Part shown: positions 1,311 through 9,936 of the stretch, in pieces
How positions within the stretch are numbered: the first letter of the stretch is position 1
Layout: each line of letters opens with the position of its first letter
The notes under the pieces: generated by a model
Told to the model about the DNA's origin: nothing
Seen by the model: only the letters and a program-made list of their open reading frames with translations
Databases searched by the model: none
From: Octopus sinensis
Lineage: Eukaryota
Assembly: GCF_006345805.1 (NCBI RefSeq)
Contig: NW_021827744.1
Location: 1-9,994, forward strand
DNA length: 9,994 bases
Direction: 5' to 3'
Translations under genes and position numbers: made by a program

Positions 1311-1770
1311 TTGGAGCGTAGGCGAGAAAGATATGCCATAATATACATCTGGAAGATCCTGGAAGGACTTGTCCCAAACTTTGGCATCGAGAGTTACACA
1401 AATGCCAGAACTGGGCGCCACTGCGTGGTGCCAAGGACTCCAAATTTGCCATCAAGATGTAGGACAAGATACTGTGATAGCCTGGGCTTCAGAGGCCCAC
1501 AGCTCTTCAATATCCTCCCGAAGAACCTGAGGGACCTGCATGGGGTGGATGCGGATGTCTTTAAAGTAGGACTGGATCTCTTCATGTCAGGTGTGCCGGA
1601 TGAACCAACTTCACGACAGGAGGTGCAGATGAGGGCAGCTGCATCGAACTCTCTCATGCACCAAATGGCAGTTGCTAAAAAGCATTCGTGAAGTAAAATC
1701 ATGTAGCAACACCAAATGGCGGTGCCCCAGCATGGCCACAGCTCGTGAGCTGAAACTAGATAAATAAAAA
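1311..1770 (+). mobile_element. 5'-truncated 3' end of a CR1/L2-group LINE (C-terminus of ORF2 plus 3' UTR and A-rich tail)
   Basis: ORF 1311-1691 reads LERRRERYAIIYIWKILEG...RGPQLFNILP...FKVGLDLF...VPDEP, the typical post-RT C-terminus of CR1/L2-group ORF2. The frame has no stops and is followed by a short UTR ending TAGATAAATAAAAAA. Confidence 0.85.
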
Positions 1771-2042
1771 ATTTTTTTAATCTGTGAGCAGTAATGTGGA
1801 ACTGCTCATAGACACACATGCGAAAGCTGTGTTCCAGTTTTGCAGCTGTCTTGGTGGCCCGAAACATCGGCACTGATGTGAAATTTCGTCCATATAACTC
1901 CAGTGTTCTGCCTTGGAAGAGCGCAGTAAGGAAACCACACGTCGAGCAAAAGGGCAAAATTCAAAATAAATGTGGATAAATAAGCATTAATTACATTTGA
2001 CAGAGTAATCTGAATGATTTGAGGTTAAGTGAGCATAGTTTG

Positions 2043-2132
2043 TTACTTAAATGACTGTGGGGCCTTCTCAGAAAAAGACGTTTCCCAATGTCTGCCATCA
2101 AAATATTCAGTTTTCATTGATAAGGACCCAAA
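2043..2132 (-). pseudogene. CENPV: C-terminal remnant of the CENP-V/GFA-like sequence
   Basis: The minus strand translates FGSLSMKTEYFDGRHWETSFSEKAPQSFK* (TAA at 2045-2043). This matches the CENP-V C-terminal SMxTExFxGxxWE motif (human ...RSMVTEEFNGSDWE, from memory). It is too short for the ORF track. Confidence 0.65.
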
Positions 2133-2245
2133 CCTAATCTTAATTCACAATAATTCATTTCCCCTACCAAGTTCTCATTTGTTCTCAAGAGCTTCTTCAC
2201 TGTGCCTGTGCCACCTGCCACTTATGTGCACGGAGGGCGGATGAG

Positions 2246-2793
2246 ATTCTTTTCTTCACTAGGCACAAGGCCTGAAATTTTTGGGGAGGGACCCAAGTAT
2301 GCAACTGGTACTTAATTTATCGACCCCGAAAGAATGAAAGGCCAAGCGGACCTTGACGGAATTTGAATTCAGAACATAACGGCAGACGAAATACCTATTT
2401 CTTTATTACCCACAAGGGGCTAAACACAGAGGGGACAAACAAGGACAGACATAGGTATTAAGTCGATTACATCGACCCCAGTGCGTAACTGGTACTTAAT
2501 TTATCGACCCCGAAAGGATGAAAGGCAAAGTCGACCTCGGCGGAATTTGAACTCACAACGTAACGCAGACGAAATACCGCTAAGCATTTCGCCCGGCGTG
2601 CTAACGTTTCTGCCAGCTCGCCGCCTTTAATTTATCGACCCCAGTGCGTAACTGGTACTTAATTTATCGACCCCGAAAGGATGAAAGGCAAAGTCGACCT
2701 CGGCGGAATTTGAACTCACAACGTAACGCAGACGAAATACCGCTAAGCATTTCGCCTGGTGTGCTAACGTTTCTTATTTCTTTATTGCCCACA
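2246..2793 (-). mobile_element. Multimeric tRNA-derived SINE, family C (three copies of the central domain)
   Basis: The element has three copies of the GTCGACTTTGCCTTTCATCCTTTCGGGGTCGATAAATTAAGTACCAGTT-type domain, one complete head (AGGCGGCGAGCTGGCAGAAACGTTAGC, 5' end near 2626), a linker, and a distinct 3' tail (CCCTCCCCAAAAATTTCAGGCCTTGTGCCTAG) ending at 2246. Confidence 0.85.
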
Positions 2794-3096
2794 GCGAGGA
2801 TTGATGCCATAAGAATCTTGGTTTGAACGAGGGACATAGAAACTCTGTACTCCGCAGATTTTGCAGAACATATGTTTTGCTGTCATGGTGTTGAATCGAT
2901 ATGTCGTTAAGTTTTCTTCTCCCTTGAGTATTTCCATATTTGATTCATGTACAATAAAATGAGTATTGTGTTTCACAAAGCAAATACTTCAATTGCATTC
3001 AAGAACCAGTAATGTTTCTAGTGTCCAGCATTGGAATTGAACCGCTCCACAGTGACAGCCACCAAAGTATGCCTTTATATTGATTTCCATTTTCAT
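2791..3096 (-). pseudogene. CENPV: Intronless CENP-V / GFA (glutathione-dependent formaldehyde-activating enzyme) family sequence, codons 1-102, with in-frame TGA at codon 36
   Basis: Translation: MKMEINIKAYFGGCHCGAVQFQCWTLETLLVLECN*SICFVKHNTHFIVHESNMEILKGEENLTTYRFNTMTAKHMFCKICGVQSFYVPRSNQDSYGINPRC. The GGCHCGAV, CxCxxC and FCKxCGVQSFY motifs are diagnostic of CENP-V/GFA. The ORF track shows only the part after the TGA (2782-2976). Confidence 0.9.
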
Positions 3097-3526
3097 GAAA
3101 CTAAATGTACTTCATCAAAGGTGTCTCAGAAAAACTTTGATGGTCAACTGGCAGGAGTGTTACTGTTATATCGCACGTTCGGATTGCCTTCGACTCAACT
3201 CTTCTCTACTCTAGTCTGACCTCGACGTCTAGTCTTCTCCCTCTATATCTACGTATTGGTCTAGCCTATTTCATCATCAGGGGGCGTCCACACAACAGTT
3301 ACAAAAGAGGAGATTCTAAGAAGAGTACAGTCAGAACTAATACAAGAGATTAATAGCAAAGCGCCGATTCTGTGTGGTTGGCCACATTCTCCGTCAAACC
3401 GATCAACGGCACTCGGTAACAGCCGTGACTTGAGTACCACCTGAAGGTAGGAGTAAAACGGACAGGCCAAAGATCACTTGCCGATGGACATTTCAAGATG
3501 ACCTGAAGAGAGTCAGGATTATGCGG

Positions 3527-3680
3527 AATGGATGTGCAAGAGCCAACCGAATCTGGAGGATGAAGCTTGCTGCCAAATGTGTCTTCTGCAATAGCCTCGG
3601 GACGACCAAAGCCTTGTGAGTGGATTTGGTAGACGGAAACTGAAAGAAGCCCGTCGTATCTATATGTATATATATGTGTG

Positions 3681-3726
<46 letters not shown>

Positions 3727-3727
3727 C

Positions 3728-3767
<40 letters not shown>

Positions 3768-3936
3768 TTGTGTGTCTGTGTTTGTCCCCCCGCCATCGCT
3801 TGACAACCGATGCTGGTGTGTTTACGTCCCCGTAACATAGCGGTTCGGCAAAAGAAACCGATAGAATAAGTACTAGGCTTACAAATGGATGTGCAAGAGC
3901 CAACCGAATCTGGAGGATGAAGCTTGCTGCCAAATG
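3527..3936 (+). repeat. Perfect 53-bp direct repeat (3527-3579 and 3884-3936) flanking a SINE fragment
   Basis: AATGGATGTGCAAGAGCCAACCGAATCTGGAGGATGAAGCTTGCTGCCAAATG occurs twice, identically. Confidence 0.95.
3580..3883 (+). mobile_element. Internal fragment of SINE family A, lacking both head and tail, with (TA)n/(GT)n core
   Basis: Collinear with the full-length copy at 7408-7852 from GTCTTCT...ATAGCC to TACTAGGCTTACAAA. Confidence 0.9.
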
Positions 3937-3965: not shown

Positions 3966-4264
3966 CGAAAGGATGAAAGGTAAAGTCGACCTCGGCGGAA
4001 TTTGAACTTAGAACGTAGCAGCAGGCGAAATACCTATTTCTTTACTACCCACAAGGGGCTAAACACAGCGAGGACAAACAAGGACAGACATAGGTATTAA
4101 GTCGATTACATCGACTCCAATGCGTAACTGGTACTTAATTAATCGACCCCGAAAGGATGAACGGCAAAGTCGACCTCGGTGGAATTTGAGCTCAGAACGT
4201 AAAGACACGAAATATCACTAAGCATTTCGCCCTGTGTGCTAACGTTTCGACCAGCTCGCCGCCT
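3966..4264 (-). mobile_element. SINE family C, dimeric copy truncated at the 3' end
   Basis: Head at about 4264 (AGGCGGCGAGCTGGTCGAAACGTTAGC), then central domain, linker and a second central domain, in the same order as 2626-2303. Confidence 0.85.
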
Positions 4265-4986
4265 TCAGAGAGATGATGAGATTGGTTACAGATAGCTTTA
4301 TTAGTGTAGCCCCGACCTCAGACTTGTCGTCCAACCTGTACTTATTTTGTCAAGCTTGGTACACCTATTTTATTAATCTAAGTTGCAAGACACAAATACA
4401 AACATAGATACGGATTTAAACAAGATTTAAGCAAGTCTGGCTACCCCTGTACTAGAACTTGTATCAACCTCCATACATTTTGCACCCAACTATATTTTAT
4501 CATCCTATCATTTGATAACTTTATTGTCGTATTTAGGAGAACCATATCTGCTAGAACGTAAGAACGAATAACGATATTGCGTTCAGATAATAAACGAAAA
4601 CATATTGCAATAATTCCAAAGGAAATATAAAATGGTAAGCCGCAATTCCAATTGTCTACGATGTAAATGATTGTGACTGTATTAAAAAGAAGCGACGCGC
4701 GGTGTAAAAAGAATGAATTCATAAAATGAGTCAATGTATAAAATATCACCTGATGGAGTCAATAACGTGTCATACGACAGGATGAATAGACGTATGTTAA
4801 GATGATAAACGAGGTGGGAGGAGGAAAACGTCACGTGATAGAATCCTGTTACACGATTGGTTGAATGAAAATAGACAATTAATAAAAAATGTTTTGTGTG
4901 TCGAGTCAACTGGCGTTGTCTCAATATCCCGATGTTTTTGCACCACAATCCACCCTGTTTCTAAAAAAACTATCTTAAGTAACATA

Positions 4987-5183
4987 GGCGCAGGAGTGGC
5001 TGTGTGGTAAGTCCCTTGCTTACCAACCACATGGTTCCAGGTTCAGTCCCACTGCGTGGCACCTTGGGCAAGTGTCTTCTACTATAGCCTCGGGCCAACA
5101 AAAGCCTTGTGAGTGGATTTGGTAGACGGAAACTGAAAGAAGCTCGTCGTATCTATATGTATATATATATGTATGTATGTGTG

Positions 5184-5225
<42 letters not shown>
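4987..5225 (+). mobile_element. SINE family A, 5' half ending in (TA)n(GT)n
   Basis: GGCGCAGGAGTGGCTGTGTGGTAAG (A box), GGTTCAGTCCC (B box) and the CORE-like CACCTTGGGCAAGTGTCTT motif. Confidence 0.87.
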
Positions 5226-6453: not shown

Positions 6454-6666
6454 AGGTGTAGGCAAGAACGTGCGGTTAAGAAGTTTGCTTTGCAGCCATG
6501 TGGTTTATGGTTCAAGTCCCACTATGTGGGACCTTGGCCGAATGTCTTCTATTACAGCCCCGAGCCGAGAATTGATTTGGTAGTACTAGAGTCGATTTGT
6601 TTGACGGAAGCCTTCAAAGCAGTGCAGTGCCCCAGCATGGCCGCAGTGTAATGAATGAAACAAATA
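6454..6666 (+). mobile_element. Old, internally deleted SINE family A relative (head joined almost directly to tail)
   Basis: Degenerate head with GGTTCAAGTCCCACT and GACCTTGGCCGAATGTCTTCTA, followed by GAGTCGATTTGTTTGAC and the tail GCAGTGCCCCAGCATGGCCGCAGT...GAAAC. Confidence 0.7.
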
Positions 6667-7407: not shown

Positions 7408-7852
7408 AGGCATAGGAGTGGTTGTGTGGTAAGTAGCTTGTTTGCCAACCACATTGTTCCGGGTTCAGTCCCACCGCGCGGCACCTTGGGCAAGTGTCTT
7501 CTACTATAGCCTTGGGCCGACCAAGGTCTTGTGAGTGGATTTGGTAGACGGAAACTGAAAGAAGAACGTCGTATATATGTATATATATGTGTGTGTGTGT
7601 GTGTGTGTGCGTGTGTGTGTATGTGTGCGTGTGTGTGTGTGTAGGTTTGTGTGTCTGTGTTTGTCCCCTCGCCCAACATCGTTTGACAACCGATGCTGGT
7701 GTGTTTGCGTCCCCGTAACTTAGCGGTTCGGGAAGAGAGACCGATAGAATAAGTAACTAGGCTTACAAAGAATAAGTCCTGGGGTCGATTTGCTCGACTA
7801 AAGGCGGTGCTCCAGCATGGCCGCAGTCAAATGACTGAAACGAATAAAAGAA
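7408..7852 (+). mobile_element. Full-length SINE family A
   Basis: tRNA-like head with A and B boxes, CORE-like motif, (TA)n(GT)n spacer, 3' half, and LINE-like tail GGCGGTGCTCCAGCATGGCCGCAGTCAAATGACTGAAAC followed by an A-rich end. Confidence 0.92.
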
Positions 7853-7935: not shown

Positions 7936-8349
7936 ACTCTTTACTCTTTTACTTGTTTCAGTCATTGACTGCGGGCCATGCTGGAGCACTGCCCTTAGTC
8001 GAGCAACTCGACCACCGGGACTTACTCTTTGTAAGCCAGTACTTATTCTATCGGTCTCTTTTGCCGAACCGCTTAAGTGACGGGGAACGTAAAAACCACA
8101 CAGCATCGGTTGTCAAGGAATGCTAGGGTGACAAACACAGACACACAAACATACACACACATATATATATATTTATATATATATACGACAGGCTTCTTTC
8201 AGTTTCCGTCTACCAAATTCACTCACAAGGCTTTGGTTAGCTGAAGGCTATAGCAGAAGACACTTGCCCAAGATGCCACGCAGTGGGACTGAACCCGGAA
8301 CCATGTGGTTGGTTAGCAAGCTACTTACCACACAGCCACTCCTGCGCCT
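7936..8349 (-). mobile_element. Full-length SINE family A, inverted (tail-to-tail) relative to 7408-7852
   Basis: The reverse complement runs from AGGCGCAGGAGTGGCTGTGTGG to CAGTCAATGACTGAAACAAGTAAAAGAGTAAAGAGT. Confidence 0.92.
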
Positions 8350-8439
8350 ATGCACGTATTTATTTTGCTTAATGGTCAAGCCAGCGCTGATTTCTCCGTA
8401 ATCGCTACTAATTTGATACGTCTACTATACATGTGTGAA

Positions 8440-9101: not shown

Positions 9102-9412
9102 ATAAACAAAAGATGAAGGCAGGTGGAGTACAAACAAACAAATGTATTAGTATAGCGCTCAGGAATAGAGCCTATAAAGAAGAAACGACATTTATTCAGT
9201 GTCAAGTGATGTAAATCGATCATACAACATTCAGACGCCATGATAGATCGTTAGCTCCTACACGCATTTTTCTCTCCTTGTTTTTTTTCTGTGTATCTTT
9301 CTGTCGAAGAGCGTAGGTTCGAAACGTAAAAGACTTTTTCTATTTCTATTCCTGAGCGCTATACTAATACATTTGTTTGTTTGTACTCCACCTGCCTTCA
9401 TCTTTTGTTTAT
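9102..9412. repeat. Perfect 68-bp inverted repeat (9102-9169 and 9345-9412) with a 175-nt spacer
   Basis: Checked base by base: ATAAACAAAAGATGAAGGCAGGTGGAGTACAAACAAACAAATGTATTAGTATAGCGCTCAGGAATAGA and its exact reverse complement. Confidence 0.95.
9296..9333 (+). ncRNA. Minimal type I hammerhead-ribozyme-like motif with a non-canonical core
   Basis: Stem I TCTTT/AAAGA, core CTGTCGA plus an extra A, stem II GAGC-GTAG-GTTC, GAAA, palindromic ACGT stem III, and a predicted cleavage site after A9328. Core position 6 is U rather than the conserved A. Confidence 0.4.
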
Positions 9413-9845: not shown

Positions 9846-9936
9846 TGGCTGCGTGGTAAGAAGCTTGCTTCCCAACCATATACTCCTGGGTTCAGTCCCA
9901 CTGCGAGGCACTTTGGACAACCGTCTTCTACTACAG
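9846..9936 (+). mobile_element. SINE family A head fragment
   Basis: TGGCTGCGTGGTAAGAAGCTTGCTTCCCAACC...GGTTCAGTCCCACTGCGAGGCACTTTGG. Confidence 0.8.

Follow-up and report, generated by a model that had tools for sequence, protein, structure and literature searches.

Whether a TGA standing in frame exactly at a conserved zinc-binding cysteine is a recoded codon or the mark of a dead gene is the question raised by a short stretch of the Octopus sinensis genome. The locus lies in 9,994 nucleotides of contig NW_021827744.1 (the whole of which is hereafter called the window), where the minus strand from 3096 to 2791, i.e. the reverse complement of 2791-3096, reads as 102 ungapped CENP-V/GFA codons with one stop among them. 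An in-frame UGA opposite a conserved cysteine is the classical signature used in the search for selenoproteins. The original prediction, made from the letters alone, preferred a recent pseudogene that had acquired one nonsense change (TGY>TGA), and kept a selenocysteine-containing GFA protein, RNA editing and an assembly error as alternatives.

Our analyses indicate, with high confidence, that the locus is a processed pseudogene (retrocopy) of the octopus CENP-V (GFA-domain) gene, and that the stop is a product of ordinary decay. The TGA encodes nothing, and the functional CENP-V gene, which has the cysteine, is located elsewhere in the genome. Processed pseudogenes are commonplace in animal genomes, and the present one, probably unannotated, is a new instance of a familiar kind.

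The reading frame and its internal stop

The frame at 3096-2791 (minus strand) translates as MKMEINIKAYFGGCHCGAVQFQCWTLETLLVLECN*SICFVKHNTHFIVHESNMEILKGEENLTTYRFNTMTAKHMFCKICGVQSFYVPRSNQDSYGINPRC, the asterisk denoting the stop. The prediction that these 102 CENP-V-like codons contain no gap and no stop other than the TGA at 2991-2989 was confirmed by the translation. The resemblance to the family far exceeds what chance would give: the Pfam GFA domain (PF04828, cut-off 24.3 bits) is matched with 41.5 bits (E=1.6e-10), and the best protein match, the 137-aa Octopus sinensis centromere protein V, is 91% identical (E=7e-79). The Pfam match places residues 11-98 of the frame on profile positions 3-94 of 115, so that the domain in the copy is cut at about profile position 94. 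After codon 102 the frame closes (GQ* followed by SINE sequence, the stop falling at codons 103-105).

The TGA (2989-2991, minus strand), found within ...LVLECN*SICF..., is codon 36 of the frame as first drawn and codon 39 (Cys39) of the octopus protein. In an alignment with 122 homologues the column of the stop is occupied by cysteine in 122/122, and all seven conserved cysteine columns are invariant. Six of the seven are retained in the copy (CHC, C..xSIC and CKIC), among them the other cysteines of the motif, as originally noted. An intact GFA domain with all seven zinc-ligand cysteines is not encoded, the middle cysteine of CxCxxC having become the stop. In the GFA of Paracoccus, C31, C33, C99 and C102 are the four ligands of a tetrahedral zinc, while C52, C54 and C57, which form CxCxxC, are the three ligands of a mobile, trigonal-planar zinc, and the C54A mutant binds one zinc only (PMC4682968); the equivalents of C52/C54/C57 in human CENP-V are C172/C174/C177 (PMC2532784). 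The original assignment of CxCxxC to the labile zinc site of the family was hence correct (PMC4682968; PMC2532784), and the TGA stands at the equivalent of Paracoccus C54 and human C174.

The parent gene and the intron-less copy

CENP-V is encoded by one gene per species in O. sinensis, O. vulgaris and O. bimaculoides (XP_029651357.1, CAI9740815.1 and XP_014790523.1, respectively). The 90% cluster of the O. sinensis protein includes those of the other two species, and CNCSIC is present in all three. In each species an intron-containing parent was found at another locus, adjoining a gene with a CCDC92 domain and composed of five coding exons separated by GT-AG introns over a span of 7-9 kb. The O. 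sinensis introns measure 5268, 2765, 734 and 118 nt, and its coding exons are located at 10001-10021, 15290-15381, 18147-18216, 18951-19065 and 19184 onward (coordinates of the parent locus).

All five coding exons are represented in the window, on the minus strand and in order. Alignment to the spliced mRNAs of the three species places the start of the retrocopy in the 3' end of parent coding exon 1 (3085-3099, TTCATGAAAATGGAA). The part derived from exon 2 (92 nt, 2993-3084) joins those of exons 1 and 3 seamlessly, and its blastn matches cover 15290-15385 of the O. sinensis locus and 14940-15035 of the O. vulgaris locus. The exon 3 part (70 nt, 2923-2992) is 98.6% identical to 18147-18217 of the O. 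sinensis locus, from which its sole difference is the C>A that creates the TGA. The exon 4 part (115 nt, 2808-2922), seamless at both junctions, is 98.3% identical to 18949-19066, and the first 17 nt of coding exon 5 follow at 2791-2807 (GCATCAATCCTCGCTGT, coding G-INPRC; 18/18 match to 19183-19200). As judged by alignment to the parent, the remainder of exon 5 to the parent stop (GSLSMKTEYFDGRHWETSFSEKAPQSFK*) is found at 2043-2130, in a frame that differs from that of the 5' part, and the first 85 nt of the parent 3'UTR at 1958-2042, where homology ends abruptly after ...TTTATTTTGAATT. Over the 173 nt from 2130 to 1958, identity reaches 98.8% with O. vulgaris and 97.7% with O. sinensis. Altogether, the four junctions from which introns are absent are exact to the base (3085/3084, 2993/2992, 2923/2922 and 2808/2807), and identity to the spliced parent amounts to ~97% over 482 nt (468/482 for O. 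vulgaris and 467/482 for O. sinensis).

The copy is truncated at its 5' end, homology starting six bases into the coding sequence. Upstream of about 3099, alignment to the three parents revealed no similarity to the region of the parent ATG or to the 5'UTR, so that neither these nor the parent promoter came with the copy. At parent codon 4, to which the ATG at 3096 corresponds, O. bimaculoides has Met and the other two parents have Thr. At the other end, past 1958, the genomic sequences of the three species still align with each other while the copy in the window stops, and the sequence on both sides of the copy is unrelated to the parent locus save for dispersed repeats. A spliced mRNA copied without introns, truncated at its 5' end and embedded in unrelated, repeat-rich DNA is a processed retrocopy.

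A 3' poly(A) tract and a target-site duplication are common, although not obligatory, hallmarks of L1-type retrocopies. No poly(A) tract was found after the 3' end at 1958, where TTGCCCTTTTGCTCG follows without an A-run, and no clear target-site duplication was found flanking the retrocopy; the only candidate is ACATTTAGTTT in the 5' flank, which agrees at 10/11 bases with ACATTTATTTT at the opposite end, where the sequence is itself parent 3'UTR and so does not qualify as a duplication. Both features may have decayed or been deleted, or may never have formed if a non-L1 LINE made the copy.

The origin of the stop can be read from the same comparison. Parent exon 2 ends with ...GAATGCAA and exon 3 starts with TTGCAGTATTTGC, i.e. 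T TGC AGT ATT TGC, giving AAT TGC AGT ATT TGC (N C S I C) in the spliced parent; the window reads AAT TGA AGT ATT TGC. TGC has thus been turned into TGA by a single C>A transversion, one base past the former exon 2/exon 3 junction. The tabulation of this codon that had been proposed across orthologues returned TGC in the parent genes of all three Octopus species (3/3), alongside the invariant cysteine of the 122 homologues.

A repeat block within the last-exon part

Between the two portions derived from exon 5 lies an interruption of ~640-660 nt (2131-2790, minus strand) without counterpart in the parent exon, as seen from the alignments and from the repeat families D7 and D8. Up to 2791 the copy reads ...GGC ATC AAT CCT CGC TGT, where the parent continues with TTG GAT TCT TAT GAG TCC; CENP-V sequence resumes at 2130 with TGGGTCC, in another frame. 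Read along the minus strand, the block opens with a SINE tail fragment (GGGCAATAAAGAAATA) and a 5'-truncated SINE, continues with a complete SINE unit of ~237 nt (2633-2396) and a 5'-truncated unit that extends to about 2290, and closes with ~140 nt partly akin to other dispersed repeats. At the O. sinensis parent locus, too, this SINE is present in many copies. At the inner edge, 2150-2131 resembles the 11 parent bases that it replaces only weakly, and contains another in-frame TGA. The block also holds a 163-nt tandem duplication (2471-2774; 1.9 copies, 98% identical), which is younger than the remainder of the SINE block.

The break that the original prediction had placed after codon 102, in SINE sequence, was recovered as GQ* followed by the SINE. 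Its exact position is ambiguous by ~10 nt, because the last 10 nt before it (2791-2800, TCCTCGCTGT) are identical to a stretch of SINE tail elsewhere in the window (within 3966-4265, …TTTGTCCTCGCTGTGTTTAGCCCCTTGTGGGTAGTAAAGAAATA). The SINE tail fragment at the break is devoid of ~14 nt of the SINE consensus, and the 10-nt identity hints at microhomology-mediated joining rather than at a clean SINE insertion. The disabling lesions of the copy comprise the TGA at codon 39, the ~650-nt interruption with its change of frame, and the loss of the original ATG.

Substitution pattern and age of the copy

Differences among the copy and the three parents were assigned by parsimony over 130 comparable codons. 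Six nonsynonymous changes are private to the copy (K10I, R23Q, A28T, P29L, C39* and E110G), or seven if codon 9 is counted, at which the copy has a unique third state (Asn), against a single private synonymous change (T67). The resulting dN/dS of ~1.5 fits the neutral expectation (binomial p=1.0), on 7-8 changes only. The three parent genes, in contrast, accumulated 5 nonsynonymous and 13 synonymous changes, a ratio of ~0.09, and the two patterns differ with a Fisher p=0.02 on small counts. Past the TGA the copy has one synonymous and one nonsynonymous private change only, too few for a dN/dS estimate. Nine private substitutions were counted in all, at parent codons 9, 10, 23, 28, 29, 39, 67 and 110 and at one 3'UTR site. 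Five of them fall within the 92 nt from exon 2 (binomial p=0.016, post hoc), whereas the parts from exons 3 and 4 have one each.

The copy shares the state of O. sinensis and O. vulgaris, and not that of O. bimaculoides, at 12 coding sites and at several positions of the 3'UTR; the opposite grouping, with O. bimaculoides rather than with the other two, is seen at three sites (codons 4, 32 and 78). Changes private to O. sinensis or to O. vulgaris are absent from it. On the simplest reading of these states the window would belong to the O. vulgaris/O. sinensis lineage or to a close sister of it, and the retrocopy would have arisen in that lineage once O. bimaculoides had diverged but before the last three substitutions common to the O. 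sinensis and O. vulgaris parents.

What was observed directly comprises the intron-less structure, the 5' truncation, the TGC of the parents, the interruption and the neutral-looking changes. The history that we propose to connect them is that a spliced CENP-V mRNA would have been reverse-transcribed, presumably by a LINE reverse transcriptase, and the cDNA inserted at this locus on the minus strand, where it would have arrived without promoter, 5'UTR or original start codon. The copy would have drifted neutrally since, TGC>TGA being one of about nine private substitutions, and ~650 nt of SINE and other repeats would have split its last-exon-derived part. The single TGY>TGA change in a recent pseudogene that had been predicted is thus upheld by the parental TGC, the second lesion and the neutral pattern; what the prediction had missed is that the pseudogene is an intron-less retrocopy.

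Alternative readings of the stop and of the interruption

Other readings of the TGA differ in what they ask of the locus. It could stem from the assembly or from base calling, or be polymorphic, with TGC as the true or alternative codon; the locus would remain a retrocopy all the same. One C>A difference is checkable only by reads, and look-ups of the exact products of four window ORFs in public assemblies (the 35-aa and 64-aa CENP-V pieces, a 126-aa LINE tail and a 187-aa ORF) found no record, hence no independent copy. One more change is nevertheless unremarkable beside about eight further private substitutions and a 650-nt interruption, and a corrected base would not give an intact gene; we regard an error as improbable. 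Still less credit is due to the possibility that the retrocopy is transcribed and its UGA bypassed, by readthrough or by A-to-I editing to UGG (Trp), to yield a truncated GFA-like protein of ~104 residues. An in-frame ATG at 3096, 66 open codons past the TGA and the extensive mRNA editing of coleoid cephalopods speak for it, but the copy has neither promoter nor 5'UTR of the parent, tryptophan is no substitute for a zinc-ligand cysteine invariant in 122/122 homologues, GQ* follows codon 102, the conserved C-terminal FDGxxWE part is separated from it by 650 nt of repeats and read in a different frame, and the substitution pattern looks neutral. A milder variant, which shares the same slight probability jointly with recoding, holds that A>G differences in the copy preserve RNA-edited positions of the parent mRNA. 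The sole A>G difference from the parent mRNA is GAG>GGG at parent codon 110 (window 2124-2130); such an origin is possible in principle for this site, and one site in nine is no enrichment. Editing, readthrough and base-call error alike would fail to rescue a gene: the frame closes at codons 103-105 in any case, and the part derived from the last exon is disrupted.

A selenoprotein form of GFA/CENP-V, which the alignment of the UGA to a conserved cysteine had brought to mind, is effectively excluded by the missing SECIS, the parental TGC, the invariant cysteine, the broken frame and the retrocopy itself. With Rfam, the whole window was free of SECIS matches at the gathering score, and so were both strands of 1500-3300 when E was relaxed to 10, which extends the earlier failure to find a canonical one between 2043 and 1770. 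TGC is found in the three Octopus parents and no homologue is without cysteine at the column; the ORF is broken downstream of the TGA; and the Sec codon of a retrocopy would need a source in the parent mRNA, which has none. Most of the grounds on which the original prediction proposed to reject recoding are present at the locus. A practically negligible probability attaches likewise to the idea that 2790-2131 is the intron of a real two-exon gene whose only defect is the TGA. C-terminal coding sequence does resume at 2130 with 98-99% identity, but the parent exon is continuous at that point, inspection around 2791 and 2131-2150 revealed no phase-compatible pair of GT donor and AG acceptor, and the block consists of SINE copies found throughout the genome.

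Repetitive surroundings

Neither Rfam at the gathering score nor ARAGORN gave any match in the window. The weak Rfam matches obtained between 1500 and 3300 (a snoRNA, a miRNA and a Streptococcus sRNA; E 1.8-7.3) were dismissed as chance.

On the plus strand, i.e. opposite to the retrocopy, an ORF of 126 aa (…RRRERYAIIYIWKILEGLVPNFG…) occupies 1311-1691, with the frames upstream of it closed. It resembles the C-terminal end of the ORF2 proteins of invertebrate LINEs and would be the 5'-truncated fragment of such an element; Pfam returned no match for it or for the 187-aa ORF. The proximity of this LINE tail to the retrocopy makes LINE activity in the region evident. Directly after it lies a motif (1714-1759) of repeat family D12, further copies of which are found at 6619, 7799 and 8911.

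Several other repeats were recorded along the window. A perfect 53-nt direct repeat (3527-3579 and 3884-3936) brackets a 5'-truncated SINE with a (TG)n/(TA)n tail (3580-3883), an arrangement suggestive of a very recent insertion whose target-site duplication is unusually long. Another SINE family, the head of which is tRNA-like (…GGTTCAGTCCCACTGCG…) although ARAGORN calls no tRNA in it, is represented at 4997-5087, 7419-7509 and 9846-9936 on the plus strand and at 8248-8338 on the minus strand, each copy being followed by TG/TA microsatellites; its presence on both strands creates inverted repeats of ~220 nt (4983-5204 against 8131-8352). Between 6674 and 7202, ~530 nt of degenerate (TG)n with interspersed GCGTG motifs show strong GC and AT skew and contain several spurious ORFs of >200 aa on both strands. 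Lastly, a 68-nt inverted repeat (9102-9169 and 9345-9412), 100% complementary, extendable by ~6 nt and separated by a 175-nt spacer, may represent a foldback or MITE-like element whose terminal repeats are perfect, or else an assembly artefact.

Implications and comparison with known systems

The result is chiefly negative, in that a TGA resembling that of a selenoprotein or a recoded gene is explained by the ordinary decay of a retrocopy. In repeat-rich cephalopod genomes, candidates with TGA at a cysteine position are best checked first for intron loss relative to the parent gene. The retrocopy also provides a modest dating marker for the O. vulgaris/O. sinensis lineage, apparently after the O. 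bimaculoides split, and its nine diagnostic bases separate pseudogene reads from true CENP-V reads in RNA-seq and editing studies.

With genuine selenoprotein genes the copy has in common an in-frame TGA opposite a conserved cysteine, but it differs from them in that no SECIS match was obtained, the TGA is not conserved, the downstream frame is broken and the locus is a retrocopy. The GFA of Paracoccus denitrificans (PDB 1X6M/1XA8), in which CxCxxC is the trigonal zinc site, belongs to the same fold family as the copy, and the GFA-family structure 3FAC matches it with E=1.5e-17, CDCSFC being aligned to CNxSIC; the window sequence nonetheless cannot make a GFA domain, because of the stop at the C54 equivalent and because the C-terminal fifth is not contiguous.

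The closest relative is the octopus CENP-V gene itself, with which the copy shares ~97% nucleotide identity (spliced coding sequence plus 85 nt of 3'UTR) and the same GFA domain, and from which it is set apart by the absence of introns, original start codon and 5'UTR, by TGA for TGC at codon 39 and seven further amino-acid changes, and by the ~650-nt repeat block in the last-exon part. Unlike animal processed pseudogenes that carry them, the octopus copy has no recognisable poly(A) tail or target-site duplication. It nevertheless resembles such pseudogenes in being a CENPV copy located elsewhere in the genome, with disabling lesions and neutral evolution, and among human genes CENPVL1 and CENPVL2 have likewise been described as pseudogenes of CENPV (PMC5393878).
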